Below, piece after piece: positions 29,441-59,186 of a stretch of DNA of 64,000 nt (position 1 is its first letter; each line of letters begins with the position of its first letter). The DNA is from Zygnema circumcarinatum SAG 698-1b (taxonomy: Eukaryota > Plantae > Zygnematophyceae). The notes beneath the pieces were generated by a model. That model saw nothing but the letters and a program-made list of their open reading frames with translations, did no database searches and was not told the DNA's origin. The stretch is from assembly GCA_037447605.1 (NCBI GenBank), contig CM074804.1, positions 7,541,909 through 7,605,908 on the forward strand, given 5' to 3'. Made by a program: the position numbers and the translations under genes.

Positions 29441-32400
29441 CTACAGTTGGTTCAACCAGCCCTTTAGAGAAGCATGCTCTGAAAGAAGGTTGGAGGAGGA
29501 CCTTGCAACGCGTGAGCCGAGGACCATGGCGCCCCTTTCAACCATGACGCCTATGAGAGCCTCCACCAAAGCCACCTCGCTGAGCGGCTTCATCAGACAC
29601 AGATCAATGCCTGCCCTCTCCCCACTCAGCCAGAAGGAACTCGTCGTTTCTGAGTAGAGGCCGAGGATGGGAACTCGATCCAGAGCTTGAATCCTCTTTA
29701 CTGTCTCATATCTGCAAGGTGAAGTCACCCGCATGAGAAGATCCCATCAGCCACATGTTACATGAAGTTTGAACATCGCGATATTTCCTGCCAGATTAAG
29801 GAATTCAACTGCAAACAAGTATAGACTACCCTCAGGGTGAGTGTCATGAGAATGCAGTCGCAATGGCGGCATGAGAACCTTACTAGAAACATTCATCACA
29901 CGCTCCCCAAACTAAATGGGTTGCCTTATGTGAGATGCCACCATTTCTCCTCTTGGGGTAAAGGTTAATGTGGAACAAACCCGTCAACATCGAGGAGGTC
30001 CAAGTCCACTAAAAAGCACATGACGAGGTCCGACTCCTGAAGCCGCGCAAGAGCGTCTGAGCAGTCCTTCACGTGAATTGCAGCGTTCCTTTCAGCAGTA
30101 AGCAACGCTGCAACTTCAGACACCACTTTCCAGGTAGCAAGACTGCTGTCCAGAACCTGCAGTTGAAACAAAAAGGAGCATATAAGAAATTTGCTTGATC
30201 GAGAAATGAACCACGGCGCTCTCGGCCGCCTGCCTTAGATGACCTGATAAACAGGCATTTTTCACAGAGCAGAAGTTCAGAGCAAAACGAAAAAGTGTTT
30301 AGTACCAGCATTCGTTTCCCCCGCATGATGTCCACCAACGTTTGCAGCTGCTGCTTGTTGGTGGGGTTTGAAATTTGGGCTCTGGAGGGGCTCCCATTCA
30401 GCCCAAAAACCTCAGCTAGGCACGCTGCAAGCATCGTGCACCTAACCGGCTTCATCAAGGTACTCGTGAAGGGACCCCTCAAAAGCTGTGCCTTTTCCTC
30501 CTCGTCCAGACTGTCATTCCACATAAACAGAAGCATAATCATAAACATAGATCACCCACCATCCGCATCTCCCTTGAATGTTCAACGCTCTCAACCCAGC
30601 AGCTAAGGACACGGAGAAGGTCAGTCAATTCGGGTCAAACATATTCAAATCGATTGAATCAGCATAAGCCCTGGAGGAGAAAACCGCGAGATTGAAAAAT
30701 GGACACTGCTGACGAGTATTTAACGACTCTTGTTTGGCTGAACAAACACTTGTTTGGCTCTTTTTTGTTCGTTTGCTTGTTCAGCACAAGCTGCAGTCAA
30801 AAAACTATCTCTCACCCGCAAGCCACGAGGATGAGTTTTGGAAGGAGACGCTCCCACTGTGCGATATTCCTGGTTTCGCATGCCCGAATAAGTAGATTAC
30901 CGAGCTCAATGCCTGTACCCAGACCCCCTGCTTCTGCGTCCACAAGGACAACATCCCACCCAACTTTGATTTGACCACTATATGGCAGTTGCCCATTGTT
31001 TTCCAGCTTGCTACTGCTGTAGATAATGGACTCTTGTATCGCTACTGCCGCGCTAAATATGTTGTCGGAAAGCTCCACTTGAAGGCCAAGTTGGCGCAAG
31101 CAGGACGCCAACACCTGACATACGAGCAGTTATGCAGGTGGGTCAGGATGAATGCCATTAGAGCAGGTTCATATGGGGGACTCGCCTGACGCATATCATA
31201 AGCGACTCATCTGAGAACGACTAGTAAGGATACTTATCAAAAGAGAGAACCCCTTTGTAAAACGCAGCCAAAAAAAAAAAAGGCCACCTCAAGATGACAG
31301 TACAAAGCGCATGAGTTTTGCAGCTTGACATGTTACTGTTTTCTGTCTGAAAATGTGGATGTGAACAGAACCATGGTTTGTAAAACGATTTTGAAGAAGG
31401 ATTGAGACATGAAGCATACCTGCTGCCGAACTTGTTGCCCATCTACGACAAGGGCCTTCTTGCCTTTCAGTTGAGCCAATCCCGGTGGCTGCAGTTGCAT
31501 TGCTTCTAGTATTCTCTGTTGCTCTAAACTGCCAGGTGGTCTATCAAGCACATCCAACTTTATGTCAAATTTGAATGTAGTTCCTATTCTTGGTCGGCTC
31601 ACAAAGTCGATGCTGCCTCCCATGAGATCTATCAACCTGCGCCCTCCATCAGTGAAAACATAAGTTCAAACGTAGGAAAGTTGTTTAATAATCAATTATA
31701 TACTCTTCGCACTCTAGCAGACAATTATGGTTGCTTTTAATCCTGCTAAGCTTGAGCTGGTAGCAGTTCATTGCCTAATATCTCAACAAAAGCCTCAACC
31801 TGTGAACCCAAAAACCCGTCAACTGTTTGAAAAAAGTTATTAAGCTCTCAGCTATTTTTTAACACAGCCGTCCATTATGCACACAGCTTACCTCTGGGCA
31901 AGACTCAGACCCACTCCCACCCCAGTCCGACCCCGTTTTCTGCCAGTCTCCAACTGTGCGAATGGGAGATATATGCGGTCTTTTGCGTTCTCTGGAATAC
32001 CAATTCCAGTATCCTCCACATTGAAATCTAGCTTCACCCTCCGCCGAACCGGAACTAAGCTACTGCCAACTGCTTCATGATCCATTTTCTCCTTCAATAA
32101 CTGTCTCTTCTCATCAAATTGCACTGTTCGGCAAACTGCTTCCCAGCTGCAACTCGCATCTGCAGCTTCTCTCCCACTTAATGTATGAAATAGCCCTTCC
32201 CATCCTTGTCCTTTGTAGCTTGGAGGTATTGTTCCTGGAAGGTATTCTGCTGACTGGAAGGGGCTGGTTGGGGGGGACGGAGAGGGAGAGGCCGACATGC
32301 TAGTGGTATTGGAGGCCATGCTATCAAGACTACTACTAGAACCTGTTTTCTTAGTCGACCAACTGGGCCGTGGCTTCTCAGGACTTAGACGTACAGTGAG

Positions 32401-35400
32401 AAGCACATGGCCAAGGTCTGTAAATTTGAGGGCATTACCCACGATATTCACCAAAATCTGCAGGCAGGAAGGGTGGATCAGAATGAGACGGAACATCTTT
32501 GCTGAGTGGGAATACGCATGTTTTCCTACAACCTTGATTGGCACGCAATGGTTGGTTGACACGCAATGGTTGGTTGACCGATGAACGAGGCGTGCAGGAA
32601 TCACGTGAATTACTATAAAAACCACGACCTCCAATGCTCAACATTCCCTCTATCACACATGCGAAAAGGGCAACTGAACAGCATTCGCGATGTTCAACTT
32701 TTTCGGCATCTCCTGCAGTATTTCCCAACAGTACTGTATACGTGGATGATGAAAGAACGACATGAAGGTAGATTGCTGCCCTAGTTAAAAAGATTTTTTG
32801 GGTTTAGAGCCACACCTGCCGAAGGCGAACCGGATCCCCGATAGCAAATGTGGGCACGGAGTCAAAGACGAGGGCAGCGAGTTCTACTCGTCCCTGTTTC
32901 TCTTGTGCCATGGGTGATAGCAAGCTGTCCCAAATGCCCAAATGACGATGTGAGTTCGTATAGATTCAGTTATAAGCAAACAAAGTAACTGCACTTTCTA
33001 CGGTAGAACCTGGCGAGACTCCCTGTTTAATCCCACTTCTCTAAGTAAGTGTCAGATGATCTCCAATATCAATTGTCAGCCGAAAGGGACATATTTCCAT
33101 AGAAAGTTATCTTGATGAGCCGATCGGTTATCTTGATGAGCCGATCGGTTATCAAAGCTTTTCCTGAATGCGAACGTAACACTAATCGAACTACATATGT
33201 TACCAACCACAACTTCTTGTGGTTCCTTTATCCCAGTCCCAAATTCATGATAATGCATGTATCTACATAGGCAGTCAAGCTGACACGAGCTGATCCAAAA
33301 ATCACAATGTTTAGAATGTTCCTAAGGGAACTTACAGAGCCCCCAACTTTCATTCACATCTTCAGATTACATCAGCAAGACAAAATCCTCTACTGACCTT
33401 AGCACTTCGTCAATGAGTGAACGAAGGTTGAATGACATGCTCTCCAGCTCAAAATGTCCCGACTCTATCATGGCATAATCCAAGACATCGTTGATAAGAT
33501 AAATGAGAATCCTTCCACTTGCTTCAGCTGTTCGTACATAGTCGAGTTGCACGGGGTCCAAGGGAGTTTTGAGAAGCAAATCCATCATTGCCAACATTTC
33601 TGCAGGGCAGCAACAGTGGTTTCAGCAAAGCATTTCCTGACTATTCAAGAGGAGGCTGGATTATGTGAGCATTGCCCACGAAAGTTGACAGCTGTATGTA
33701 TGCAGGTTGGCTCTTCCGCATAGGACAGTTGGAGCATACCCCTCATGGGAGCGCGAACCTCTTGTGTCATTGCCGCCAGGAAAGTGGACTTTGCTGTATT
33801 GCCAGCTTCCGCAGCCTGCTTCAGCGAAGACATTCGAACAAAATCCTCCTTCATTTGGACAAACCGACGTATCGCCTCTATTAAAATCTGCAGTCAATCA
33901 GGAGTTGTGTATCACTGATCATAAAGGATCTGAAGTGTTGTAAAAACAGGCATGTACAGGAAGACGAGGTAATCCTTAAAACACTAGGCTAAGTTCAAAG
34001 ACATTGAGAAAGAGCACAAAGGCAAACATGTTGACTTCACGTGTGTCATCAAACATCCATCAGAGGTATAGTTCCTGTCCACCTCTGCCTGCAATAACAT
34101 TCTCAATTGATCTGTATTATTGTCTACTATTTTGTGGACAGCAGCAGGAGAAAATGAAGGTCTCACCTGCAAGAGGAGAAGGTAAATAGCCAAAGCTCCG
34201 AGCGCCATGATCAGTGCTATCGTTGGAAAATATTGTTCTTCTTTGTATCTGCACCGAACCTCGTGTATCCTTCCTTTATCACCAAGGTCAAGAGGTGTGA
34301 CCAACCACTTTGGTGACTTAATATCATCGTCTTCAACATCTTCTCTGAACTTCCAATTGTCAGGAACGAAGGCTGAATACGAAGTCTTTGACAAGAGCAA
34401 TTCCGGGGGCTTGATCTCTCTTTGCATCGGATTCAAAGAAGGCGGTTCATAGAGGGGGATAGGATGGCGAAAATCTGTGACATCATCCACTCGCATGATG
34501 ACATCGAAAATTCGACCTTGCTGCAGATCTCTGCAATCCAGCTACATGGGAAATGTTAGTTAAGGCCCTACAAAAACGAAGCGCAATGTAGAACACAGAA
34601 CAGAACGAAAGCTCTATGATAAGTGGCTATACACTTCCCATGCAGCTTCGGCGGTCGCCAGCCTACGGCCCATCGGTTAGCCAGCCAACCTACTTGGTGA
34701 CAGAAGGAAGATACGGACTTCAAAGATTACATGACTGTATCCACATCTCCTTTTCTGTTTACTTTTTTTGTTCATGTCCTGAAATGCATGGCTAATTGCT
34801 AGTATAATGGTAGTGCTCTCCATGGTCCTTCTTCATTGAAGCATAAAAACCATCTCCTCTAGCCGAGCAACCGAAATGTACTACGGATATGAACTCCCCC
34901 CTGGCTGAACATGATCACAACCTTAAGAACCTAAGACATACATATTCACGCAGTGGCTTGAAACTGAATGCACCATAGAACTCATGCCATCCAATAACAT
35001 AGACAAGCTCTTTTGCTGCCAGTTGAGTCGGTTCTAAGAGCTCACGCCAAGACTCCTTCCACCATTGACTCGAAATCAATAGTTGCACCTGCACAACCTG
35101 TGGTAGCGCTCCTTTTCTCCTCAATGCTGGAGTTTGGTCCCATCTCCATCGGCCGATTCGGAAAGGCAACACCTACACCCATCTTCTGATCCTGTTCACC
35201 CACCATGGAAAAGCTTGACAATCAGCCAATCTGGTTAATCCGAGAATACTAAGGAAAAGTGGGAGGACCCACACGAGAAGATACAGTTGAAGCTTGTCAA
35301 AGAAGCCTCCTGACTATTCGAGCACAACTTCATAGATATTGTGTTCTGAGGTACGAAGGAGGCAACCTCACGTTGTCCAAAAGTGGTCACGTAGCGATCT

Positions 35401-37976
35401 AAGAGAGACTGTGTTCGACCCTGCGCACAAACTTTAGGGTACCCTAAAAACCCTAAAAGCCCAGCCTATGGTTGTATGATGTACAATTCTCCGATCACAA
35501 AACTGGCATCTCCAAACATACATGGTTTGACCAGACAAGGGAAATCTCGTGGAGATGTGTGAGCATCAATGCATAAAAACAAGAAAACACAATGATTAAA
35601 AAATATATTCCTCAAAATTTAACACAATGCTGCATCAAACCCAGTCCTCCAATAAAGCGCAATAGCTCAGGTAATAGACAACTTGTAAACAAACGATTAG
35701 GCTTCGTTCTAAAACCCTTCGTGTGATCGTTTCCGAAAGATGACTAGCTGACAATTGGTTACTTTGGCAGAACTAATGTGCCAGTCAGTGCTAATATTGT
35801 CCCCAGGACACGGCAAGTGGCAGTTCGTCCATTCGGGGAATGTATTCAAAATTTTTGGCGTGTGCTGTGGAGAAGGTCCTTCTCTAGAATTCCCTTTAAT
35901 GACATGACGTTCCAAAGTGGACGATCTCAATGGCATCAGCCAGTTGAGCATGCTATTTGTGTCATGAAAGACCTCGCCCATATACTCATACCAATGCCAA
36001 GGAGTCGAAATGGTACAAACGGATAAATAAATTCCTAACCTCTAAGGCCACCCAAGAATAAGCTTACCATACATCAGAAGCTGTTTTCCCGCAGCAGCTT
36101 TCATAGAAAAATCACCTGCAGTTTCTTACCGCCATAGTCATGTCCTCTCGAGACACACTTCTGCATGTTATCGAGGTCGACAGGGCCTACTTTATTGACA
36201 AAGTAACCAAATCCAATTCGGCGGGCCGGGTCTCTAACTTTCACTGACCCCCTGGAAAACATGCAGCTAGGATGCATAGCTGGGAGAGTCCGACTGACCT
36301 TAGATGCCACCAACACGTAGGGTGGAGAAACCACTAGGCCATCCGCCTCTTTAGCTCGCTCCCAAAGTATCACATGCTGGTCCGATATTGAAGATAGATC
36401 TACTCCTTGCAAGTAGGTCAGGTTGGAGCCGTGCGTCTTAACAATGTAGTCTGGTCTAGGAGGACTGGGTTTCTGTAGGAAGCAATCATAATGGCAACTG
36501 AGAGGAGGTCAGCTGCTGAACATAAGAAAACGAAAGTTTGTCGATGAGCATTGATCCATCACAGACAATCAAGGCCACATGGGAGCAGAGATTCAGTAAC
36601 AAAGTCAGACCCGTGTATGCCAATCGATGATTGTCAATCCCATGCACTCCTCAAATTCTCGACGGAGATGATGGGGCACAAAGGCGCCGAAGCCCATTCG
36701 GAGAACCATGGGCCGTGCATGAAGAGTTTCTTCCAGATACTCCGCAACTGTTGCCTGCATAGAGATGCAGCAGTCCACCAGAAGTCGAGCCATTTTTACC
36801 AAGTTTGTTCTAATCCCCTGAGCATGTATGAACAGCACTCCTAACTGAGAAAATACCATTTTCTTTGACAGATAATGCTCCCTGTAGCTAAGCTGACGAC
36901 AATTTCTCCCAAGAACTCCTTCAGACTTCACTCTCTACGACTGCTTAGATTCCTGAACAGCCTTCCTGTAGATCCTATACTGACCTCTTCCACTCGCGGC
37001 ACAATGTGTAGTTGACAAGGAGGGGTTCCTGGAGCAAACACTGGAAATCGTGCAGGGGGGTTTTCGTAGGCACTGCGATTTAAAGTGACAATAAGTGCCT
37101 GCCACGCAACAGGCATGCCCGACACACACATCGACAGCACCGCTCACTGTCAGGAACATAGGTATCTCCCATTCCGTATACTTTGCACAAACTGCTGCTT
37201 GAACTTGTTGATCGATATGCCTACTGTGATTGAGATTATAATGCTGACACCTTTAGTACACGCTAGGATTGCAACACATGGTGCATCGAGCCCCTACTGC
37301 AAGCCGTCTTCAAGAAGCTATGGCCGTCCTGATAGAGCAAACAGTAAACAGTTCCTCATAAAGTGCGCTTATGAGACAGCAGGAGACCTCAACCTCCCTA
37401 AGGTCCTTAAGATGAGACAAGAATCACTATATAATGATAATTAGAGATTTAACACTAATGGCTAACATGCTACCTACACCGATCTCTCAAACACAATGCC
37501 CAACAAAATCTTCAATTTTAGCGTTAGCATGCAAGTGGAAACAGATAAAAGGGAACCTTCGGAAACCGAGAGTGCAGAATCGGGTCAGTGCAACTGCTAC
37601 TTTGACTTGCTTTTTCTCGGTCAACAGCTACATACGTTGAAGCAAGCGTGTTGCTCCTTATGGAATACGGCCAACAAACCTAGAAGGCAAAGAACCAGGT
37701 TTCAGATACAGCAGGAGTCACATTCACCTGGAACGTCTGCACATGGTTAGTGTTTTTTTTGAACAGGCCCGCCATTATTCGAGTACGATCGGTGCAAATC
37801 GTCTCCAACTGCAAACGGAGGAAGACTTTCGTTAAGAGTCTCCAATGAGATAAGCACTCTTCAAGTGAAGCTAATGTGTAGCCTCGAGATATTATCCGCC
37901 GGCATGAAATGAAGCAAATAATCCCACATGAAAGAACAATGGTGGCAAAATCAATGCTTGTATCCCCTATTGCCAT
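29441..37976 (-). CDS. CHASE-domain hybrid histidine kinase (cytokinin-receptor-like), paralog B, with His-to-Gln in the H-box (candidate pseudo-HK)
   Basis: Order: TM (FATIVLSCGIICFI); LETICTDRTRIMAGLFKKNTNHV; EETLHARPMVLRMG; LGDKGRIHEVRCRY plus TM2; KSTFLAAMTQEVRAPMRG; LINDVLDYAMIESG; N-box [14 protein letters not shown]; VEDTGIGIP; GVGVGLSL; receiver-like domain; receiver CFLVDLDLLDVDG...MKPL. All exons examined keep frame. An additional upstream exon is possible. Confidence 0.9.
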
Positions 37977-38299
37977 CTAGTGAGCCGCACCACTGCTTTT
38001 GGCATTGCAATGCAACTTCTGAGACGCATACGTAGGGCTTCATTTTGCCGTAGAGCCGAAGCCTACTAATATGCTCAAAATTAAAGCGATAGGCTGGCTT
38101 ATAATATTTTGAGGAATGGAATAGTCACTGAAGATAACCGGCCTAGTCAACTTTTCATATTCTAGCGCTTCAATATACTTTCGTTTCTCATTGAGCTGCA
38201 GAGTTTTTCGAGGTTCATCTATATTCCTATGCATGAAGCTAGCAACGGAAATGCACAGCGAATAACCGCAATCTCAAGGACGTCCAGTCACACTGAGTG

Positions 38300-39850
38300 T
38301 GGTTGAATAACAACCTGCAGAACATGGTAAATCCCTAAAACAGGTGAAAAAAGTGGATTTTTACATGCAATCTCCTCTCTTCGCCGTAGCTGCTGCGGGC
38401 CCAAAGGAATACATGAACCGAGACTGCAAGTCCGAGCATGTAACAAAAGGGAAGGAACGTTTTCTGAAATGCAGCTCCTCTTAAAGCAATATTTCCATGC
38501 AGAAACCCCCCTTCAACGAAACTCTTGACACCGCCACGCTTCTTTTCCATGGTAGGCCCGCATCCATTCTTCGGCTGAAAGCCAATCTGTTTGGCAGGGA
38601 GGGGGCCAGTCACGCTGCTCCGAGGAGGCTCTTCACGGGAGAGAGCTTCAGCTAAACCCGCTGTGTGGCGTCTTTTCAGGGTAGGGCGGGAAGGAGGGGA
38701 GGCGGGCCGCCGCCAGGCTGCAGCCATGGCTCCCCAAAGCCTTGCCTTCGTCCTCCTCCCAGCGAGAGAGAGTGAGAGAGCGAGAGAGAGGGGCAGACTA
38801 CTGCCTTCAACCTTTCAGAGCTTTTACGGGCAGCAAGAAAACATTCAATCCCAAATCATGATGACACGTCACGTTCATCCGCCAATTAGATCACGATTTT
38901 CGCTTCGGTCAGCTCAACAAACGGTCAGATCTTGCAAAAAGTTCACGCCCGCCCAAAAGAGTACGGCCCATTGTACGGCACTCGCAACAAAAACAAAACG
39001 ACAAAAGTCGATAACCGCCGGCCCCCTTCGCGCCACGTGGCGCCATAGCAGCAGGTGATGCTTGAGGGCGCCACGTGGCAGCCGCTGGAGGCCGATCTTA
39101 CAAGATGTACGGACGGCTTCGGTGCCCTCAGCGCACTTGCCTGTGGGCCCCACGCCACGCTCGCGCGCAGTCCCTTCACACGTGCGAACCGACAACTGGC
39201 TTTCAAAAAGTGCAAAGAGCAAAAAGCGCTGCAGGAAAAAGCCGCGCGCTTTCCCCACACGTGCACGTGGAGATCGCGGGCTGGGACACGTGGCGGCAGT
39301 GACGTGCGCCACCGACACCAGAACGCGGAGGTGCGCGCCACGTGGCCGCGCCGCGGTTAGGTCGCACGTGTGGAGAGTCCCTGATTGGCGCAGGCGGTGA
39401 CACGTGGTGGAGAGATGGGAACCGTTGGCAGATGACATGGAAAGGACGGGTCCTTTTCCATCGAGTCGCTGTTCTCCAATGCCTGGTCACCACGTGTCCG
39501 AAGTGTTTAGGTGGCGCTTCTCCATTGGGCGATGACCAACTCTTGTTCGCTCGCACGGGGAAATCTCCAGGGCGTGTGGCGAGCAGGGGAGGGCAGGCAA
39601 GGGAGGGAACGGGAAGAGATCCCTTGGAGGAGACGCTTCCCTGCTGCTGCAGATTAGGGTTTGGAGGCGGCCCAAGGGTCAAGTGCCGGCCGACAAGAAC
39701 TTCAAGGCGCAAAGGGTGCGCTGATAGCCGTTATCCTATTACAAGGAGGCGCGGTGGAGCTCGTGGCGCAAGGCTTCGCGGAGGATTTGTTTGCATGGTC
39801 GTATTATCAGAGAAAACTTGCGTTTCCTGAAGAGTGAAGTGTTTGTTGGC
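38300..39850. promoter_or_regulatory. CpG-rich region between the divergent CHASE kinase genes (putative bidirectional promoter), with 10 CACGTG G-boxes
   Basis: The two genes diverge from this region. CACGTG starts at 39034, 39072, 39179, 39258, 39264, 39287, 39339, 39365, 39401 and 39491. Confidence 0.7.
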
Positions 39851-39951
39851 AGAAATCTGCAGCAAGGGCATGCTGCTTTAGACTGCATTACCTTTTGCGG
39901 AGAGCTTCATTGTACGCAGAGCGTTTCAGACGGAGAAGGGAAGCATATAGG

Positions 39952-42900
39952 ATGCAAAAGGGGCCGACGACGGGGGGATATGGAGGTATGTCACCAAATG
40001 ATCGTGAAGGAAGTCGACGAGTTGTCACGAGTGCTCAGAATGGACCGCTGCACAAGGCAGGGTCGCTGCAAAGTTTTCCAATGTCACCTCGTGCAACATC
40101 TGGACAGTCATCCAGCAACGAACGGAAATCAAGGCGAATGTTACTGGAATGGCGCTCCTGGAAGATTATGCTTATATTACTCTGGCATTTTACAGGCATC
40201 GTTCTTTCTTTCAGTGTATTTAATGCTTCCTGGAAAAAATTTCAGCAGCCAAGACAGGCACAGGTTTGCGTCCATCCCTTTCATGTCTTCCGAAACATTC
40301 TGCCCCCGTGCGCCACATCTCAATGTGAAAATATGCAGCTAATTTGTTAGTGCAATTCTCTACAACCCCCATCTGGACGCCTTAGGTTGGCACCAAGGAA
40401 ACTGCGTTTTCCTATAGAATGCATTAACGAAGTGTGGAATCATGTTGGACTAAATTTGCGTCAAGAGCCCTCAAGGATTTCATGCTGACGATTGCTCACG
40501 GTTTTCATGCTAGCAACCCTGACTTTTTGTACTTTTGCAAGTGGAATTTTTTTCTGCAAAAGCAATCATTGTGTCGCGTTGTATACTTGGACACATTCCA
40601 GGCCAACTTTATACTGTCATAATAGTTGCTCTCACAGAGATCAATTTTGTCGGATTCAATAACCTACATGCTGGAATAAAGGTTGCCTACGTAAACCGGA
40701 AGATCATTATTATCAGTAATTTTTCAAAATGTAGCTGCATCAATAGAGAATAACTAGACGCTTGTGCGCCTGAAAAATGAGTTTTCTGTTTTCATGACCT
40801 CTTCCAATACTCAGAATCTCGATCGTTACGTATGCAATCGTTGTGCCAGTTGTTTGATCATTTCCATTATTGTGGATCTTAATGCCATTTGTCAGAGCAA
40901 ACGGTGTTTTAACCAGAAATAAATCAACAGTAGATTGCATTTGAACGTTGTTTTCGTGATAACTGCTGAGATTGCAAAGCAGGTTACACGGTTTAAATAA
41001 GGGATCCAAAGAAAGACTTTGAGTCAGAAGTGCAAAGCTTGCTGGTGATTCTCGAATTATTCCAATGCTTCCGGCAAGTATGGCGTCAAATACTTGAGAG
41101 TCTTTCCTTTAGTCAATGAAGTAGACATCTTGTCGAATAGTTTCCCGATTTTTCGCATGTTTACTGAATGTATAACATGTAAAAATAGAGAGGAGACTGA
41201 TTCTGTGTTCACTATGATATCAAGTCTGAGGAAGAAGCATCGTATTTAGGGAACAGGCGAAAAGCTGTAACCATGAACGGAATAACAAACTGTACACGCA
41301 GGGTCTCTCAGATGATTACATTATGCACCCTTGATAGAGCACCTCCTCAGTAGAGAGGGCCACCTCCTTCATTTCAACTTTTTTCTGGTCACTTGCATGG
41401 GACGGGCGATGAACTGAAGCCCTAGAAAGTTGCTGCAATGATTCAGTGACACGCTTGTTTCCTTCTTTATCTGCTTTTCACATCAATGAATGATGATCTG
41501 ACATGGTATTGATATCACGCTGATTTTAATTTGTTTGCTTTACCAGTTGATGATGATGTGCTCAGATCGGGGGCGAATAATCAATGGCATGTTTTTGTCG
41601 AACGCAAACCACGTTAAGTCAATCAAGGTAACTCCCCTCGACTGCTTGGGTTTTCTTTAGTTACGATGGAGAACGGCATCTTTAATCAAGTAATGAACGT
41701 GACGAAGTTGGTTTGGCATCTTGCTTATTTTGGACGGTATCAAATCAATCAGAGAGAAAACATATTTCAGAGAAGCCACCTTACACATGCCAATTGCAAA
41801 CAATCTCATGCCTGCCGGAGAGTCTCGGCAGTTTTGGTGCCCCACTATGATGATTCGGCAAGGACTGGATTGCAGGCATTTTTTGCAACTGTGAATAGGA
41901 CAAACTATGAATATCCCCCGCTTCAGCCGCTCACATTCGGAGACAATCTACCAGTATGTGACGGCACATATATTCCTCGAATCGACCAGGTATGGTCGAT
42001 CTAATGCTGTCGTCTTCATTGCGAATGTTCAGGAAAGTTGGTTAAAATTCCGTATAGCACTGCAAAGCCTAGCCGGTTTTGTGGGTTTAACACGTCTATC
42101 CTTAACATGGGTTGGAGGAAATCGGGCTTCTTGACACATGTTGGAATTAGTGTGCGTCAATAAATCCGCACTGCTTAGTTTAAGCCAGATGTTAGTTGGA
42201 AACATTCTAATTTTAGGATGCTTCGCCAATGACAGAACGTAGTAGATGAGCATTTATTGGCGACGGCCTTTGCACGGCCATTGGTGGATCGAATCGCGTA
42301 TTGCGTGAGAATACCTCACGCTTTTCGGAGCAAATTTGAGGAGTGCACTGGCCAGGAGATTATTGACTGGCATTCTCGAGTGCGTTTTCCATCATGCTAC
42401 TTTTTTTTCTTTACAGTTATTTGGAGTGCGATGAATGCATACATTTCCAACAAATTTCGTTTGTAATAAGAGTAGTCAGAATTTTTGCTGGCAGATGCTT
42501 GCACCAACTTCATACAGCTGGCAAACGTTTCTTGTTTTCGTACTCCTCGAGGGAGAAAGACTATACCCGAAGTCAATCTTAGCTGGATTGTTCAACCTTG
42601 TTGCAGGTACGACGATGTGATATGCGAGAGTATGTTGTAAAGACGCATTGTCCAAATGTGTCTTATCTGAACCAAATGGATGTCCTATCCATATCCGACT
42701 TTCACATACAGATGCTAGAAAGGGCTAAGGTAGCTGACGGAACAGGACCAACACTCTCTCCCCCGTTTCCTCTTGTTGCGATTGATGTGAGTTTTACTTC
42801 ACCATCATTCCTCACCACAACGCAGCCTATCCTTTTGTACCGTAGGCCGTACCTCGTGCCATTTCTCCACGATAATGACATGAATGCCACTGATGACGGC

Positions 42901-45900
42901 GACCTCACGCAGACTGGACTGACTAACTAAACTTTCATTTCTTTGTCGCAGAGAGTGGGCCTGGGTATGGCGTTTCCAATCAGACCTGCTGCTCTTGGGC
43001 CCAGTGCCACTGCTGATGAGAGGGCGGATGCGACGACTGGTTATCTAGTAGCGACTGTCGATTTCGAAACCTCAGTGGAAGAAGTGGTCAAGTGCGGCTT
43101 CTTCCCTGCATTGCGTGCACCTGCTGATGGCGTCACTGATGACGAGTAAAATTGAACAAGGGCTTCTCAATTGTTTGTAGGTGAAGGTCAAGCGACTTTA
43201 ATTCTGCTTGGCATTTGACTAAAGCTTTCCTTGTCGATGGGTTTCAGCAACTTACTCAAATGCTCAGACGATATGGAACGACTTGTTATGCGGCTGGATG
43301 ATGTAACGGATCCAAATCAGCCAATCCCCTTATACGAGCCTGATGATGGAACAAGGATCGAACAGAAATATGTTCCTCCACCTGAACTTATTGCTTCACA
43401 AGAGTCAAATTTGAAAACAATAGCTTGGGCAAAGGTTGATAAAGATGTCCTTGATTCCCCCGAATGGTTTGTGTACAAACTGGACTTTGGTGATCCGGAG
43501 CGGGTGCACGAGTTGCGATGCCGCTATGAATGGGAGATAATGTTCCCTCAAATGGCGGTCGTTCCTGCAGTGGGCACGCTGCTGATCTGGTGGCTTTTGT
43601 TACAGGTGAGCTTCTAGGAAGGATTTTAGGTTCCTTTATCTCAATCATAGCCTCTTGATAGACTACTGGTGGGTGGCCTTCTTTCACTCGCGAAGATCGG
43701 TTGTTTATGCAAAACTCAGCTTTTTTTCGTTTTCTCAGCCTAAATGTGAATCTAGAGGAAGGCTTCATTCACGTTAGGATGTTTGGCTGTAACGTGGCTG
43801 ATGTTTTGCAAAAGGACTTAATTTTAAAAGTTTTATGCCTTTCCTCGGGGAATAGATCATTTGGGGTGCTATACAACGATTTGAGCATATGAAGAGGGAC
43901 TTCATTCGAATGGCCACACTTAAGCAAGCAGCTGAGGCTGGGAATGTGGCAAAGTCGGCATTTTTAGCAACCATGACGCATGAGATCCGCACGCCAATGA
44001 ATGGTATGCAATGTCACTCGGAATCTCGTTTTCGTATTATGGTTGAATAGTACGACGTGCTTGATTTGAAGTTGCTCTTTTGCTTCTCATCCGTCTGCTT
44101 TTGAGTAAATGAAGGCACTCCGGAAGGTACTCCGGCCCAAGCTATACATGCATCGATTTTCTTCAGTTACTAGTCGGTTGAAGGTCATTACTGCACGTTA
44201 TTCTTATGCTGCTTACCGCGATTCTGCAGGAATGATGGGAATGATCAACCTCTTGCTTAAAACTGCTTTGGACCCCCTTCAGTTAGACTATGTGAAAACA
44301 GCTGAGGCCAGCGGAAAAGCGCTCGTTCATCTAATCAACGATGTGCTGGATTTTTCAAAGATTGAGTCTGGCAATCTTGAGATGGAGAGCATGTCTTTCA
44401 ATATTCGCAGCCTCGTTGACGAGGTCCTCAGGTAAGTTTGGAGTCCAAATTTTGGACTGCGAACGCGGAAGGAGTCATGTTGATTGCAACCTTTCCTTCT
44501 GGCTTGGAGCTGACATTGCTAACACAAGACTCTATGCATTTTTAGGCAGATAACATCTGATGATTAAAGAACTTGACTGTAACCTGCTTGGCAACAATAT
44601 GACATCCTGGGAGTCTTGAAGTCTGTTGAGCTTAGCATGTGCTTTGCAACCATGGGTGTTATGAAGCCATCCTGACGCAGTCCTGGCTGCAGTGTACTGC
44701 TCCCTCAGGTGGAGGAGAAGAGGGGAAAGTTAGAAGTGGCTGCACTCGTTCACGAGTCAGTGCCAATGACGCTCATTGGAGACCCCGTGCGCCTTTCCCA
44801 GGTAGGCCTGTCGTTGGTTGCCTCAAATTCGAGTTGGGCAGATTTATCCCGAACGCGAACAAGGAGTGTAAAATGGACCCACTTAGAGAAAGAAGGCAAG
44901 AGGCCTTTAAGGGAAAATGTGTGCATTTTCTGTTGATCTAGAGTAATCTGCCTGAGAAAACGTCCCATGTTGACTATCTTCGTGCCCAGGTGCTCGTTAA
45001 CTTGGTTGGGAATGCCCTTAAGTTCACGGAAACTGGACACGTCTTCATTACTGTGAGGCTGAACTATAAACCGGTCAAAGAGGGCTATAGGAAGACACCG
45101 AGATCACGTACTAGCTTCGAGAGTTTTTCATCTTCAAACCGCAGTACAACGCCTTCCCCTCCTCGGAGTCCGCTGAGGTCAGGCAACAGTTCAGACTCGC
45201 TCAATGAGCGTCCTGGCCCATTACCATGGGTCGCTTGGGAAGAAGGGGAGTTTCAAACGCTGAGTGGTCGCGAGACAGTTGATAAAAGCTGCAGCTGGGA
45301 AAGCATTTTGAAAGCTTTGGAGGAGGATGAGCGATACTTGGCGGAAAGAGCAGCCGTGGACACAGAAGGTTCGAAAGGGCTTGTACCCGTACGAAGACGA
45401 GTGAAACTAATCTTCCAGGTGGTTACTCGGCTTACTGTTGTTGTGTGAAATTTACCTTGCTGTGAGGTGTGTTAATAGCTTGCCAACTTGTTCACTTGCA
45501 CGGAGACAAACACATTTGTGACTATTTACTTACGAGTCACCGCGCTCAGCCAATTGCCTCTCCTTTGGAGTGAACCTTTCCTCCTGCATTGCCGGATTGT
45601 CAGGTGGAGGACACCGGGATGGGTATCCCGTTGGCTTTGAGGGATCGCATATTTGAGCCATTTGCTAAGCTGGACAGGAGGAAGAAAGTCATCAAGAATT
45701 CAGGAACAGGAATCGGAATCTGTTTGTCCAAAAGGTACTACGTATGTGACGCTTGCATACTGACTTAGCGAATTTAGGAAACGCTGCAGCCCTTCGTGCT
45801 GATATCCAATGCAGCGCCTCACAGCTCGTCTGGGTGGAATTTGTATTATTCTCAATGCGAAGTTTTTTAGTGATAGTGTTCTTGAAATCGTAACTTATTG

Positions 45901-48392
45901 CAGACCATTTGGTTCCTGTGCTTGAAGGTTGATCAACCTCATGGATGGAAACATCGACTTTGTAAGCAAGGTAGGAGTGGGCACTACCTTCACGTTTGAT
46001 CTGAAACTGGACTTATTGGAAAAGACAAACAACAGCACTATGATGAGCCCTCGGCGCTGGGCATGGGAACCTGTTGGGCTGAGCAAACTACGAGAAAAAC
46101 GGGCCTTGGTGGTGGATGGACGCCAAATCAGGCAACAGGTATGTTTGAGCTTTAATTTTCTTCGATTGTTAGCTAATTTCTTTTCATTCAGTGCATTCCA
46201 AACTGTCCAATTCATTTACACCCCCTAGTTCATTGCTTGGTCCAGGTATTAGCGACCTACCTACGCCGCTTGGGAATAACAGTCGAACTTGCAGACAACA
46301 TCTATAGCGCTGCGTTGGCCATTCAGGAATGTGCTCTCCAACGTCTGCAACCTAGTGAAGGGCATGGGGATCCATTTTCACTTATAACGGACAAGGAGTC
46401 ACCAGATCAATCAAGTGATGGATGGGATGTAGTGCTGGTGGATGCTGAACCGGGAGGACCCGACAGTGGTCTAGAACTGGGAAGATTGCTCCTCAAATCA
46501 AAGGAAGTGCAGCAGGCTTTGCAGAAAAACGTTTGTCTGCCAAAGCTAGTCCTTGTAACGTGGAGGTAGGTGATCACTTTTCTTTGACACATAAGTAGAG
46601 CTTTCTTCTATTTTTTCTGTTCTTTCTTCTGTTCTTTTGCTTCTGTTCTGTTTGTTTTTTCTTCTGTTTTTTTTTTGGTTGACTTTAGGTTCCTTACCTA
46701 CTTGGAGCCAATAGGGGGTCAAGGCTCGATTGTTGGCAGTGATGGTTTAGCAGAGTTTGGCAAAGGCTCGCTTGCAAGAGATGGATGGCTAGAACTGCAG
46801 GTGTATAATCTACAAACAGAGTCCCTATGGATAATTCTTGCAACTGTGGTAGAATTTCGACATGTGTGGTGGCAAGTCTCTTTCTGGGCTGCCTATGTAG
46901 TAGATCGATTCTGCTCGCATGCAGTAACTTCCCCGAATTGTTGCCTGGAGACTTGTGACCTTTTGAGGAGTATTGTGAACATATTTTGGTGCAGTTTGGA
47001 TGAGCAGCAAAGAACGGAGGCGGAGCAGTTGGGGTTTTCTGGATGGCTGTTGAAACCAGTACGCTCCTCGGTACTGATATCGTGTCTGCAACAAGTTTTT
47101 GGCCTCTCCACCAGAAAACAAGTAGCTGGCCAGGCACCACTTGTATCAAAGGAGCTGCAAATGCTTGCTGAAGTCCTGAAAGAGAAGAGAATCCTTGTGA
47201 GTGGAACTACCGTGTCTTTGCTTCCCCTTTGTTTAAGCAGACCCTGTAGGAGACTTGAAATTTCTGTGACCGACATGCAGAAAAACAGCTGTGGGTTTCG
47301 CGGAATATCACAGTATTCCAACTGTCAGATCGCATGTTCTCCCTTGTGCTAGGTGAATTATCTCCCTCAAAAAAAATAGGATGCTTGTATTAAGCTGCCG
47401 ATGATGTCTAATTTGCGAGCTATGAAACTCTTTAACTTTTGGCTGCCCGTTGTTGCAGGTTGTAGACGACAGCCCAGTAAACCGCAAGGTTGCATCAGCA
47501 ACAATGTTGAAGTATGGCGCGGCGGCAGTAGTGTGTGTCAACGGCGGAGTGGAGGCAGTGCGGAAAATGCGCTCGCCTCATTCATTCGATTGCGTCCTTA
47601 TGGATCTCCAAATGCCGGACATGGACGGGTGCGTTCCCGATTATACTTTGAGTTAGCCTGCAGCATAGGGGTCATGGAATGGAATGCATTGCATTGCCAT
47701 TGCAAGATATGCCACAAGTGCAGCCTGCACTTCATTAAACTGCGATTACCGGCAAGTCTAGAGCGTGAGATGCAATAACAGACTTAAGGACATCGAGCAT
47801 AGACTTGGCTGTTTCCTTGCAATCTTTATGTCGTTAGATTTTTCTGGATTGCGTTGTCCTGGTTAAGAATATGTGTCTTGCTCGGGATAAAGTTGAGTCT
47901 GGGTTTTGGCGGCCGGCTGGGCGATTGTGAAGGTTTTCTTCAAGTCAACCACCTTTGAGCCTGGAAAGTGGCATTACTAGTGAGGAGCTAACAAACGAGC
48001 TGTCCATAGAAACTTGTACAAAAGGCCCACTGTCTAAACTATGTTCTGGCTAATGGCCACCTAATGGTTTGCTGTTACACAGGTTTGAAGCCACACGAAA
48101 GATTCGAAGTATGGAGAGAGAATACAATGAGGCACACGGAACCTCCAACCACGTTCCAATATTGACGCTTACTGCAGAAGTGTTGAAGGGGTCCCGATTG
48201 GAGTCAGAGAGGGCGGGGATGGACGCCTTCATCACAAAGCCACTGGAAGAGGAAGCCCTCGTCGCCACCCTTTTGAGCGTTTTCAGCAAGAGGGGACAGG
48301 GCAAGGCCGTCACACCACAATTCGACGCTCCTTCATCATCGAAGCAGGAAAATCCCTCTCTTCGGAATTGGCTAAGGAATGGCAGGATGTAG
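39952..48392 (+). CDS. CHASE-domain hybrid histidine kinase (cytokinin-receptor-like), paralog A, catalytically canonical
   Basis: Exons include 39952-40263 ([21 protein letters not shown]), 41547-41627 ([20 protein letters not shown]), 41876-41989, 42236-42379 ([13 protein letters not shown]), 42607-42786, 42952-43091, 43248-43605 ([16 protein letters not shown] plus TM2) and 43856-44003 ([18 protein letters not shown]). Downstream motifs: [42 protein letters not shown], and receiver VVDDS...[13 protein letters not shown]...FITKPL. The start codon is tentative because the frame is open from 39838. Confidence 0.93.
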
Positions 48393-53829: not shown

Positions 53830-55915
53830 ACCCTAACCCTTTCCCCGGGGGGGCCACGTGGCGCACCCTCCGCGCCCAGGCGGGCAGGTCGCAGACGCCG
53901 TCGTAGAAGGTCCCCGCGGAGAGTCCGAAGGCGCAGTTTGCCGCCAGGAACCAGACGGCCGTCAGCAGGGGCCGCCGACGAATCGGCATGCGCCACGTCA
54001 CCCCAGGGCGGCGCTGGGCGTGCCACGTGGTAGCTCCACGTCACCCCAATGCGGCTCTGGGCGTGCCACGCGGCAGAGCCACAGTCGTGAGACGCCGTCG
54101 GTCGGCACGGGTCAGCGCAGTCGTGAAATATGATTGGCCCTCACCCAAAAAAAAAAAAAAAATCAAAAAAAAAATTGATAAAATTAATTAATTAAATTTA
54201 AAAAAAAAAAATTAAAATTATTTTCTCCATTTGTAAAGCGAGCCATGCGGGGATTGATTGCAAAGCAATGCAATGCAATGTTTGGAACAAACCCATTTGG
54301 GCCGAATGCTGTGTATGCGCTTCGGTAAAAGGCTTTGCAGCTTCATCTCATCGTCTCTTGGTCTCTGGCGCTTTCAGGACCCAAAAGCGACGATGGAAGT
54401 GTTAGTTTGATTGCGGAAAATGTTAGTCAGCGAGAATGTGGTTAGCGCTGGTTGATTAGTAGATGTGCATGGTTAACTGCATGGTTTGGTCAAGTGAGTA
54501 GTGTCTCGTGACTAAAGCAGGAAGTGGTGGCTAGAACTCGAAGGCGGAAGAAGAGAATCGCTGATTGGACTACACCTGACCAGACCAGTTCACTAACTAA
54601 GGCATGAAAATGTTGGCTAATTCGCCTCCATGACCACGACCTGCCGTCTAGTCAGCACAATTTGTAGATCCTAGTCACACGTGTGATCGAAAGTGACAAC
54701 GCAACTGTCTGCCCTCCACGGAACGGGCTTTATGTCGATATCCGTTTAACGGGATGATGTTGACCGTTCGGCGTAACACACAATCTCCGTCACACGTGGC
54801 AAGTCACGCGCAGTACGGCGGGGAGGGAAGCTTCCAAGATTTCTATTCCGACCGTACGGGAGCTTTGTCCGAAAGTAGGTTCAAAAAACGACAAAACGAA
54901 GGCCCGCCCGCGTGAAGCTCGGGCGCAGTACCACGTGGAGTCGTTGACTGCGGGCAGCCGCGGATTGACGCCACGTGGTGGTAGGTATTTCGGCGCGGCA
55001 TTGATGACGGCGGCGGGCAGCGCGTCGTCGTCTACGTTGCGCCCACAGGCCAAACCGACCAACCGATAGAAGTACGGCCATTCTGTCCCGGTCTGAACAC
55101 CAAGGACCAATCTCCGCCGTCCGCTCTGGTGATCTTACGGCGGAGGAACTCCCGGGTCCGCAGAAAAAAGGGCAATCCCCTCTGATTGGCTGCGCGACTT
55201 CGACCTCGATCTTCGTGGCGCGCTAAGCGGGGGTCACGCCACGCGCCTAAGTTTGAGCACTGCTGTACTTGATTGGCAGCCGGCTCGCACTTGCGAGTCC
55301 TTCTGTGTGCGACGCGTGGCGAATGTGGTCCCACCGAGACCCAATCTTCCACTTACGACCACCGTCGATGGCTGTCGGAGGATCCTTCAGCAGCGTCCGA
55401 TCAGCCATGAAGATACGGATGACGTCATCCGTCCGCTCGCCGTAGAATCACCGTGTAGCCGTGATGCCACGTGGAGCCCTCGCTAGACCTCCCCCCCCTC
55501 TGCCGAGGGACGCTTGTCGGGACCTGCGACAAGATCTGTCTTACTGCACGGACGGCCCGGATCGCCCATCGACCAAAATATGTGGCCACTGGCGTTATTT
55601 CAGTCGTTCGATCTCTGACATTGCCGATCAGGCCTGCACGCGCGCCCCCACCGACCAGAAAGCGCCGCCGCGCAGAATGAAATTCCTGGGAAAAGGCCGC
55701 CGTTGTGTCGGTGCGCTCTGGCGCTTTCGAACGCACGCCGACACGTGCCGCGTTTGGCCTCGCCAAAAGCGCCGTCCCACCGGTTGAACCGTCGTCTTGT
55801 CCAGACACGTGGCGTTCGGGAAGTGGTCTGGAGAACGACGGAACCGTTTTCTATACCGAGTCGTTCCCACTGCAATCTGGGATTTGGCACTCCATAAGGC
55901 GGCGGGGGGGGGGGG
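53830..55915. promoter_or_regulatory. CpG-rich, G-box-rich intergenic region between divergent genes
   Basis: CACGTG at 53855, 54024, 54678, 54793, 54932, 54972, 55468, 55742 and 55806, plus a 43-bp tandem duplication at 53993 and 54036. Confidence 0.55.
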
Positions 55916-59176: not shown

Positions 59177-59186
59177 NNNNNNNNNN

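Follow-up and report, generated by a model that had tools for sequence, protein, structure and literature searches.

Two divergently transcribed genes for non-classical CHASE hybrid histidine kinases (CHASE histidine kinases, CHKs) were identified in a 64,000-nucleotide stretch of the genome of Zygnema circumcarinatum SAG 698-1b, a member of the Zygnematophyceae (contig CM074804.1 of assembly GCA_037447605.1, forward-strand positions 7,541,909 to 7,605,908; this whole stretch is referred to as the window, and positions are counted from its first letter). Gene A, on the forward strand, carries the canonical phospho-acceptor His, whereas its head-to-head paralog on the reverse strand, gene B, carries Gln at this position. 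Judged from its sequence, B is an intact and selectively maintained gene rather than a decaying one, and comparison with an expressed ortholog from another species (referred to as P0001), which has the same replacement, indicates that the His-to-Gln change is old. B is probably a regulatory partner, and not a dead gene or a phosphatase. More specifically, we assign a probability of about 0.5 to the explanation that B is functional and belongs to an old and conserved clade of "pseudo-CHKs", likely acting as an ATP-binding, ligand-sensing and non-phosphorylatable dimer partner of His-bearing paralogs.

Phospho-acceptor site, gene models and domains

Direct reading of both strands located every codon that had been named in an earlier note on this DNA, including the two on which the comparison of A and B turns. 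In A, codon 485 (43979..43981, + strand) is CAT and encodes the canonical phospho-acceptor His within ATG ACG CAT GAG. In B, codon 504 (33762..33764, – strand) is CAA and places Gln at the phospho-acceptor position of the H-box (ATG ACA CAA GAG, or MTQEVRAPMR in the protein). Judged by its H-box His, A (His485) thus bears the mark of an active histidine kinase, which B (Gln504) lacks. After splicing, the H-box of B continues as APMR-E-ML, and the Gly that the earlier note had appended to this motif turned out to be read-through into the intron. B moreover has Ala for the Thr of the HExxT motif. No alternative His-bearing H-box exon was found across the whole B locus, and no other His was found in the alpha-1 helix of B. 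In a related His-bearing CHK on a metagenome contig (L008, positions 220-714), the exon encoding the second transmembrane (TM) helix and the H-box exon are continuous, while both A and B have an intron there.

The models of both genes were obtained by spliced alignment, in which each junction was chosen as the GT/AG pair yielding the best in-frame alignment. The B model was guided by P0001, and the A model by B together with a second transcript protein (P0106). Gene A (39952..48392, + strand) comprises 17 exons encoding 1186 amino acids (39952-40263, 41547-41627, 41876-41989, 42236-42379, 42607-42786, 42952-43091, 43248-43605, 43856-44003, 44230-44431, 44693-44801, 44990-45418, 45604-45734, 45928-46138, 46246-46565, 46995-47196, 47459-47628 and 48083-48392), with the first ATG of the exon-1 open reading frame (ORF) taken as its start and putative 5′ end. 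Gene B (29441..38727, – strand) comprises 16 exons encoding 1192 amino acids (38727-38365, 37808-37728, 37098-36985, 36754-36611, 36472-36299, 35191-35046, 34530-34167, 33887-33740, 33599-33398, 32924-32816, 32457-31892, 31636-31420, 31114-30816, 30510-30306, 30156-29981 and 29711-29441). The outer ends of the two models (29441 and 48392) coincide exactly with those in the earlier note. All 31 introns of A and B are of the GT-AG type with good consensus, both reading frames are open, and not a single in-frame stop occurs over the 1192 codons of B.

The two genes had been said to share intron positions and phases, and this holds for 15 introns, all with identical phases. However, A has one extra intron (45419-45603, + strand), which lies inside the ATP-binding domain and separates the N-box exon from the G1 exon, at a point where B is continuous (exon 11 of B measures 566 nt, versus 429 + 131 nt for exons 11 and 12 of A). 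Exon-by-exon tblastn comparison of the loci yielded 16 collinear protein-level matches (34-71% identity, E down to 6e-32), and the whole proteins are 46% identical, a resemblance that by sequence comparison places the paralogy of A and B far beyond chance.

Both proteins display the succession TM, CHASE, TM, HisKA, HATPase_c, CRE1-like domain and receiver, and P0001 scored above the Pfam gathering cut-offs for CHASE, HisKA, HATPase_c, Receiver_CRE1 and Response_reg. The CHASE domain between the two TM helices reached 46.4 bits in P0001 (cut-off 25); single B exons are too short for a Pfam CHASE match of their own, and over this region B is 70% identical to P0001 and has hydrophobic segments on either flank. 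HisKA was recognised in exon 9 of B (28.1 bits; cut-off 26.9), in A (38.7 bits) and in P0001 (47.5 bits). The catalytic and ATP-binding (CA) domain of B is contained in exon 11 (31892..32457, – strand; Pfam HATPase_c 40.1 bits), which unites the N-box, a Ser/Pro-rich insert and the G1, F and G2 boxes. The N-box Asn, the G1 motif DTGIG and the G2-like GVGVG are all present, as had been read earlier. Among solved structures, P0001 matched the AHK4 sensor (3T4J, E 2e-16) and the cytoplasmic fragment of Medicago CRE1 (7P8E, E 1e-104), and the best matches of its dimerisation and histidine phosphotransfer (DHp) domain were GacS and RetS.

The cytokinin-contacting residues of the AHK4 pocket are absent from both A and B in the alignment. 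In place of the classical FAQDTV segment, which we take to hold the adenine-contacting Asp of AHK4, A has THCPNV and B has THGSNL, and Ser stands at the "wol" Thr position. As far as the alignment goes, this matches the account by Lomin et al. (2021; PMC8657898) of "sister" CHKs that do not bind cytokinin and have Ser for the "wol" Thr, and that were first reported by Gruhn et al. (2014). Algal CHKs are assigned to the non-classical subfamily in the review literature (Powell & Heyl 2023; PMC10338860).

The long Ser/Pro-rich insert between N-box and G1 is found in both paralogs (window 32100-32380 in exon 11 of B, and 45040-45330 in exon 11 of A) and in their relatives. It is predicted to be disordered in an AlphaFold model of P0001 (predicted local distance difference test, pLDDT, <30), and a conserved LSGRE..D..CSW segment comes directly after it. 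A further motif, SL(K/R)(G/N)WL followed by 2-5 residues, ends A (48360-48389), B (29444-29470), P0001 and the related protein P0005. This motif is absent from Spirogloea and classical CHKs, and may serve in docking or sorting at the C-terminus.

An expressed ortholog and a His-less clade

P0001 (1183 amino acids) came from a search of representatives for which the final CHASE exon of A and of B was used; with the profile of the C-terminal CHASE exon, only 14 matches were obtained. It is encoded as a complete ORF on intron-less contigs of 3.9-4.1 kb from RNA-seq runs SRR8128903 and SRR8128907 of another species. Of the A and B loci, its cDNA matches the exons of B only (68-78% nucleotide identity per exon, about 74% overall). 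At the protein level P0001 is 65% identical to B, with which it paired at 100/100 in a maximum-likelihood (ML) tree, and both of its independent RNA-seq assemblies show the CAA Gln codon of B.

The loss of the His extends beyond these two proteins, since P0005 (a EukProt Trinity transcript) has Asn at this position, and B, P0001 and P0005 form one clade in the ML tree (100/98). On this tree, the presence or absence of the His changes once. Gln and Asn codons are each one nucleotide step from His, and more than one replacement at the acceptor position may have taken place within the His-less clade. Approximately unbiased (AU) tests, for which the groups were named after the tree had been seen, rejected the grouping of P0005 with A (p = 0.001) or with P0106 (p = 0.006), as well as a clade of A, B and P0001 without P0005 (p = 0.002). 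A recent tandem duplication as the origin of the A/B pair was considered and rejected, given the 46% identity of the two proteins and a duplication older than the split from the P0005 lineage (the latter AU test).

The His was kept in all other relatives found, namely A, P0106, three Spirogloea proteins, a Mesotaenium protein, two classical-type CHKs and P0111 (a 752-aa His-bearing Logan relative), and metagenome contigs L006-L009 contained exons of His-bearing relatives only. In the ML tree, which was sampled without Physcomitrium patens sequences, A and B fall with Mesotaenium and Spirogloea CHKs, both from zygnematophyte algae, and apart from the classical angiosperm CHK of Erythranthe (P0109; 98/97). 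For gene order, the comparison species offered transcripts only. A homolog search with the P0001 sensor returned only P0001 itself, one with the full-length query was swamped by bacterial kinases, and one with the P0001 DHp domain extended the set only by Spirogloea sequences, an angiosperm CHK and a Logan fragment. Because these searches added few sequences, the taxon sampling is small.

P0106, which stems from the same RNA-seq project as P0001 (transcript L003), is a His-bearing non-classical CHK in which the receiver phospho-Asp is Ala (ILALRLPDIDG). Its defect is complementary to that of the His-less clade.

Selection and the retention of functional sites

Between B and P0001, the proportions of synonymous (pS) and nonsynonymous (pN) differences were 0.75 and 0.23, respectively. 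Because the synonymous sites were saturated, which blocked a corrected dN/dS, the raw proportions were used. By domain, pN amounted to 0.17 for the sensor, 0.14 for the CA domain and 0.36 for the receiver, which at 45% identity is the fastest-evolving ordered domain. Where correction was feasible, omega was ~0.08 for the sensor and ~0.09 for the CA domain. Neutral drift would not have left the 1192 codons and 15 splice-site pairs of B intact over a saturated synonymous distance. The suspicion in the earlier note that B is no decaying pseudogene is thus borne out by the open 16-exon model, by the expressed ortholog with the same CAA codon and by the excess of pS over pN.

Constraint on individual sites was gauged from those columns of the alignment in which seven His-bearing proteins agree, a column being counted as kept when the same residue is found in all three His-less proteins. 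By this count the CA domain kept 23 of its 24 invariant columns, the CRE1-like middle domain all 8, the sensor 11 of 12 and the DHp domain 25 of 34, with eight of the nine DHp changes falling in the H-box segment. The terminal receiver, on the other hand, kept 10 of 26 (CA versus receiver, Fisher's exact p = 1.5e-5). Six columns were changed in all three His-less proteins, and these are divided equally between the H-box (the Thr at His –3, the His itself and the Ile at His +2) and the receiver, where one of the three is the second Asp of the DD box. The combination of His loss with degenerate ATP-binding boxes, as in subfamily-2 ethylene receptors, was not seen, the ATP-binding boxes being fully conserved in all three His-less proteins.

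Within the receiver of B, the "DD box" reads GAC AGC (30145..30150, – strand) and thus Asp-Ser, so that the second acidic-pocket Asp is lost. Asp occupies the corresponding column in 7/7 His-bearing relatives; in the three His-less proteins it is replaced by Ser, Gly or Pro. As known from CheY, the second Asp of the DD box is a Mg2+ ligand. The phospho-acceptor Asp (GAC, 30004..30006, – strand) and the receiver Lys (AAG, 29588..29590, – strand) are both retained in B, as had been noted earlier, and are replaced by Asn and Thr, respectively, in P0001. For the full pocket (DD, D, T/S and K), A has the complete set, whereas the residues are D-S, D, S and K in B, D-G, N, S and T in P0001, and D-P, D, T and K in P0005. 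The receiver exons of B gave no Pfam Response_reg match at E < 0.01, versus 36.4 and 21 bits for their equivalents in A. In the AlphaFold model of the cytoplasmic part of P0001 (mean pLDDT 67.5, lowered by the disordered Ser/Pro insert), the DHp hairpin, the CA domain and the terminal receiver are nevertheless predicted as folded, at pLDDT ~80. The (beta-alpha)5 fold of this receiver is complete even though its Asp and Lys are lost. The model thereby indicates that the terminal receiver of P0001 is a folded pseudo-receiver.

Possible roles of B and its shared spacer with A

Pseudo-CHKs would, in the explanation we prefer, be streptophyte non-classical (subfamily-2 or "sister") membrane receptors that dropped the His-to-Asp phosphorelay, while purifying selection held their CHASE sensor, dimerisation helices, canonical ATP-binding domain and CRE1-like middle domain. 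Through its highly conserved DHp helices, B would pair with paralogs that bear the His, for instance the adjacent A, yielding an asymmetric receptor with a single phosphorylatable His. In such a dimer, the part of B would be to sense the ligand and possibly to phosphorylate the His of A in trans in an ATP-dependent manner. Alternatively, B might cap the output of A, the direction of its effect being proposed tentatively. Dimers with His-bearing paralogs offer the simplest account of the canonical CA domain in a clade without the His, and the decoy or heterodimer partner considered in the earlier note is still the best interpretation. A and B are most alike in their DHp exons (67-71% identity), and heterodimer action has been proposed for the sister CHKs that do not bind cytokinin (Lomin et al. 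2021; PMC8657898).

Co-expression of the two partners could be provided by a shared, G-box-rich bidirectional promoter. The spacer between the start codons (38728..39951), which is a candidate for this role, measures 1224 bp, in place of the shared region of about 2 kb given in the earlier note, and has a GC content of 0.58 versus 0.43 in the introns. Midway between the divergent start codons lies a cluster of ten CACGTG G-box cores (39032..39496), with the cores themselves spanning 463 bp (39034-39496) and three of them being part of the perfect palindrome GCCACGTGGC (at 39032, 39070 and 39337). Over the 64-kb window, 30 CACGTG cores were observed versus 9.0 +/- 3.0 expected from shuffles. 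Palindromic sites of the G-box or abscisic acid-responsive element (ABRE) type work in both orientations with land-plant bZIP and bHLH factors, and a promoter shared by A and B is plausible because such sites act both ways. From its sequence, the cluster looks like a light- or abscisic acid (ABA)-type bidirectional promoter module. The co-regulation that the earlier note had suggested is thus in line with the head-to-head layout and the G-box-rich spacer, and is itself what we infer from them. A purine run of the AGAGAG(N)GAGAG type is located at window 38761-38796 (plus strand as read), 35-70 bp upstream of the B start codon.

Some observations weigh against the proposed partnership. High DHp conservation is general in the family, and because the DHp domain of B is about as similar to that of A as to that of P0001, the likeness is not specific to an A-B interface. 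The His-less sequences found number only three, in databases that are thin for these taxa. G-box clusters moreover occur elsewhere in the window, as nine CACGTG cores fall within ~2 kb at 53855-55811, which may be another G-box-rich promoter.

Strong constraint on the sensor and CA domains would also be expected if B had an output outside the phosphorelay, with a B homodimer signalling by way of a partner protein that it binds, or by a novel kinase activity, and with the pseudo-receiver and CRE1-like domain serving as docking modules. A receiver that keeps its fold and not its chemistry (as in the P0001 model) and a C-terminal SL(K/R)(G/N)WL motif conserved in A, B, P0001 and P0005 would suit such docking, and subfamily-2 ethylene receptors and phytochromes provide precedents in which the His was lost and the signal passes via CTR1-type partners or Ser/Thr phosphorylation (PMC6324907). 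However, the N, G1, F and G2 boxes of B are fully canonical, unlike those of subfamily-2 ethylene receptors, and are a better fit to His-directed catalysis on a partner. We regard this output as the main alternative, possible though on the unlikely side.

The earlier note had also envisaged a phosphatase-only receptor. In this version, B would take phosphate off phosphorylated histidine phosphotransfer (HPt) proteins via its retained receiver Asp, or act as a sink for it, in the manner of AHK4 in the absence of cytokinin. Indeed, B has not lost the first Asp of the DD box, the phospho-Asp or the Lys, and has Ser at the Thr position, and the phosphatase activity of AHK4 needs only the receiver Asp973 (PMC6963811). 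Yet this AHK4 activity is reverse phosphotransfer onto the receiver Asp, and dephosphorylation of the receiver in turn needs the Mg2+ site, Thr/Ser and Lys (PMC6963811). The bifunctional kinase/phosphatase cycle of AHK4 depends on a working receiver, which the B clade lacks. The second pocket Asp is lost in 3/3 His-less proteins, the ortholog P0001 is also without the phospho-Asp and Lys, no Response_reg match was obtained for the receiver exons of B (36 and 21 bits in A), and the receiver evolves fastest among the ordered domains (pN 0.36, 45% identity). Because the phosphorylation site has been dismantled across the clade (the second Asp throughout, and the Asp and Lys in P0001), a phosphatase activity that depends on the receiver cannot be the conserved function of this clade. 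The phosphatase or sink explanation as a whole is quite improbable, and on these residues a receiver-dependent phosphatase activity of B alone is doubtful as well. That B is a silent relic, or its Gln an assembly error, is hardly credible in view of 1192 codons and 15 canonical introns kept intact despite saturated synonymous divergence from P0001, the same CAA codon in transcripts of another species, and a locus in which no second H-box exon was found.

A bolder form of the A-B partnership, which we consider speculative and rather unlikely, is that A and B together constitute a "split" asymmetric receptor. B would then keep its ATP-binding domain to phosphorylate the His of its partner in trans, output would need two different sensors, and both halves would be expressed from one G-box promoter. 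Together with the His-bearing, receiver-Asp-less type exemplified by P0106, this would link complementary half-dead receptors into a network of several kinases in algae closely related to land plants.

Kinases that act without their own His, via kinase-kinase or kinase-regulator contacts, are known from bacteria, with RetS-GacS of Pseudomonas as the textbook kinase-kinase heterodimer pair and DivL of Caulobacter as another case. Their likeness to B is an analogy of models only, in that a kinase with a dispensable or missing His modulates a canonical kinase through DHp contacts; they are bacterial, and unrelated to B in the sensor domain. In plants, the pseudo-HPt AHP6, the pseudo-response regulators, the subfamily-2 ethylene receptors and CSK are natural two-component regulators without a phospho-site (PMC5975490, PMC6324907). 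Their losses occurred at the HPt or response-regulator level, or were accompanied by degenerate ATP-binding boxes, whereas B is a CHASE receptor that lost its His and kept every ATP-binding box. AHK4/CRE1 has the same domain order as the B clade, but in B the cytokinin-contact residues are replaced and the His is absent. The sister CHKs of P. patens and streptophyte algae resemble A and B in domain architecture; nevertheless, those of P. patens considered by Lomin et al. (PMC8657898) all have typical H-box, DD, D1 and K boxes, in contrast to B and its clade, in which both the His and the second Asp of the pocket are missing. No report of a natural His-less CHK was found in the literature searched, with Gruhn 2014 and 2015 outside its coverage.

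The B clade can thus be viewed as a real, conserved His-less variant within the known non-classical CHK subfamily, for which a dimer-partner mechanism is plausible. Non-classical CHASE kinases bind cytokinin poorly and are treated as complete kinases in current reviews, and their role in bryophytes and streptophyte algae bears on the origin of cytokinin signalling. A His-less sub-clade beside a complete paralog points to regulation by receiver-receiver pairing, and if pairing does occur, B would be the receptor-level counterpart of the pseudo-HPt AHP6. A and B also make up a simple protein pair for phosphorylation and interaction assays.

An Rfam scan of the window gave no match, and a 10-N run marking an assembly gap is located at window 59177-59186.

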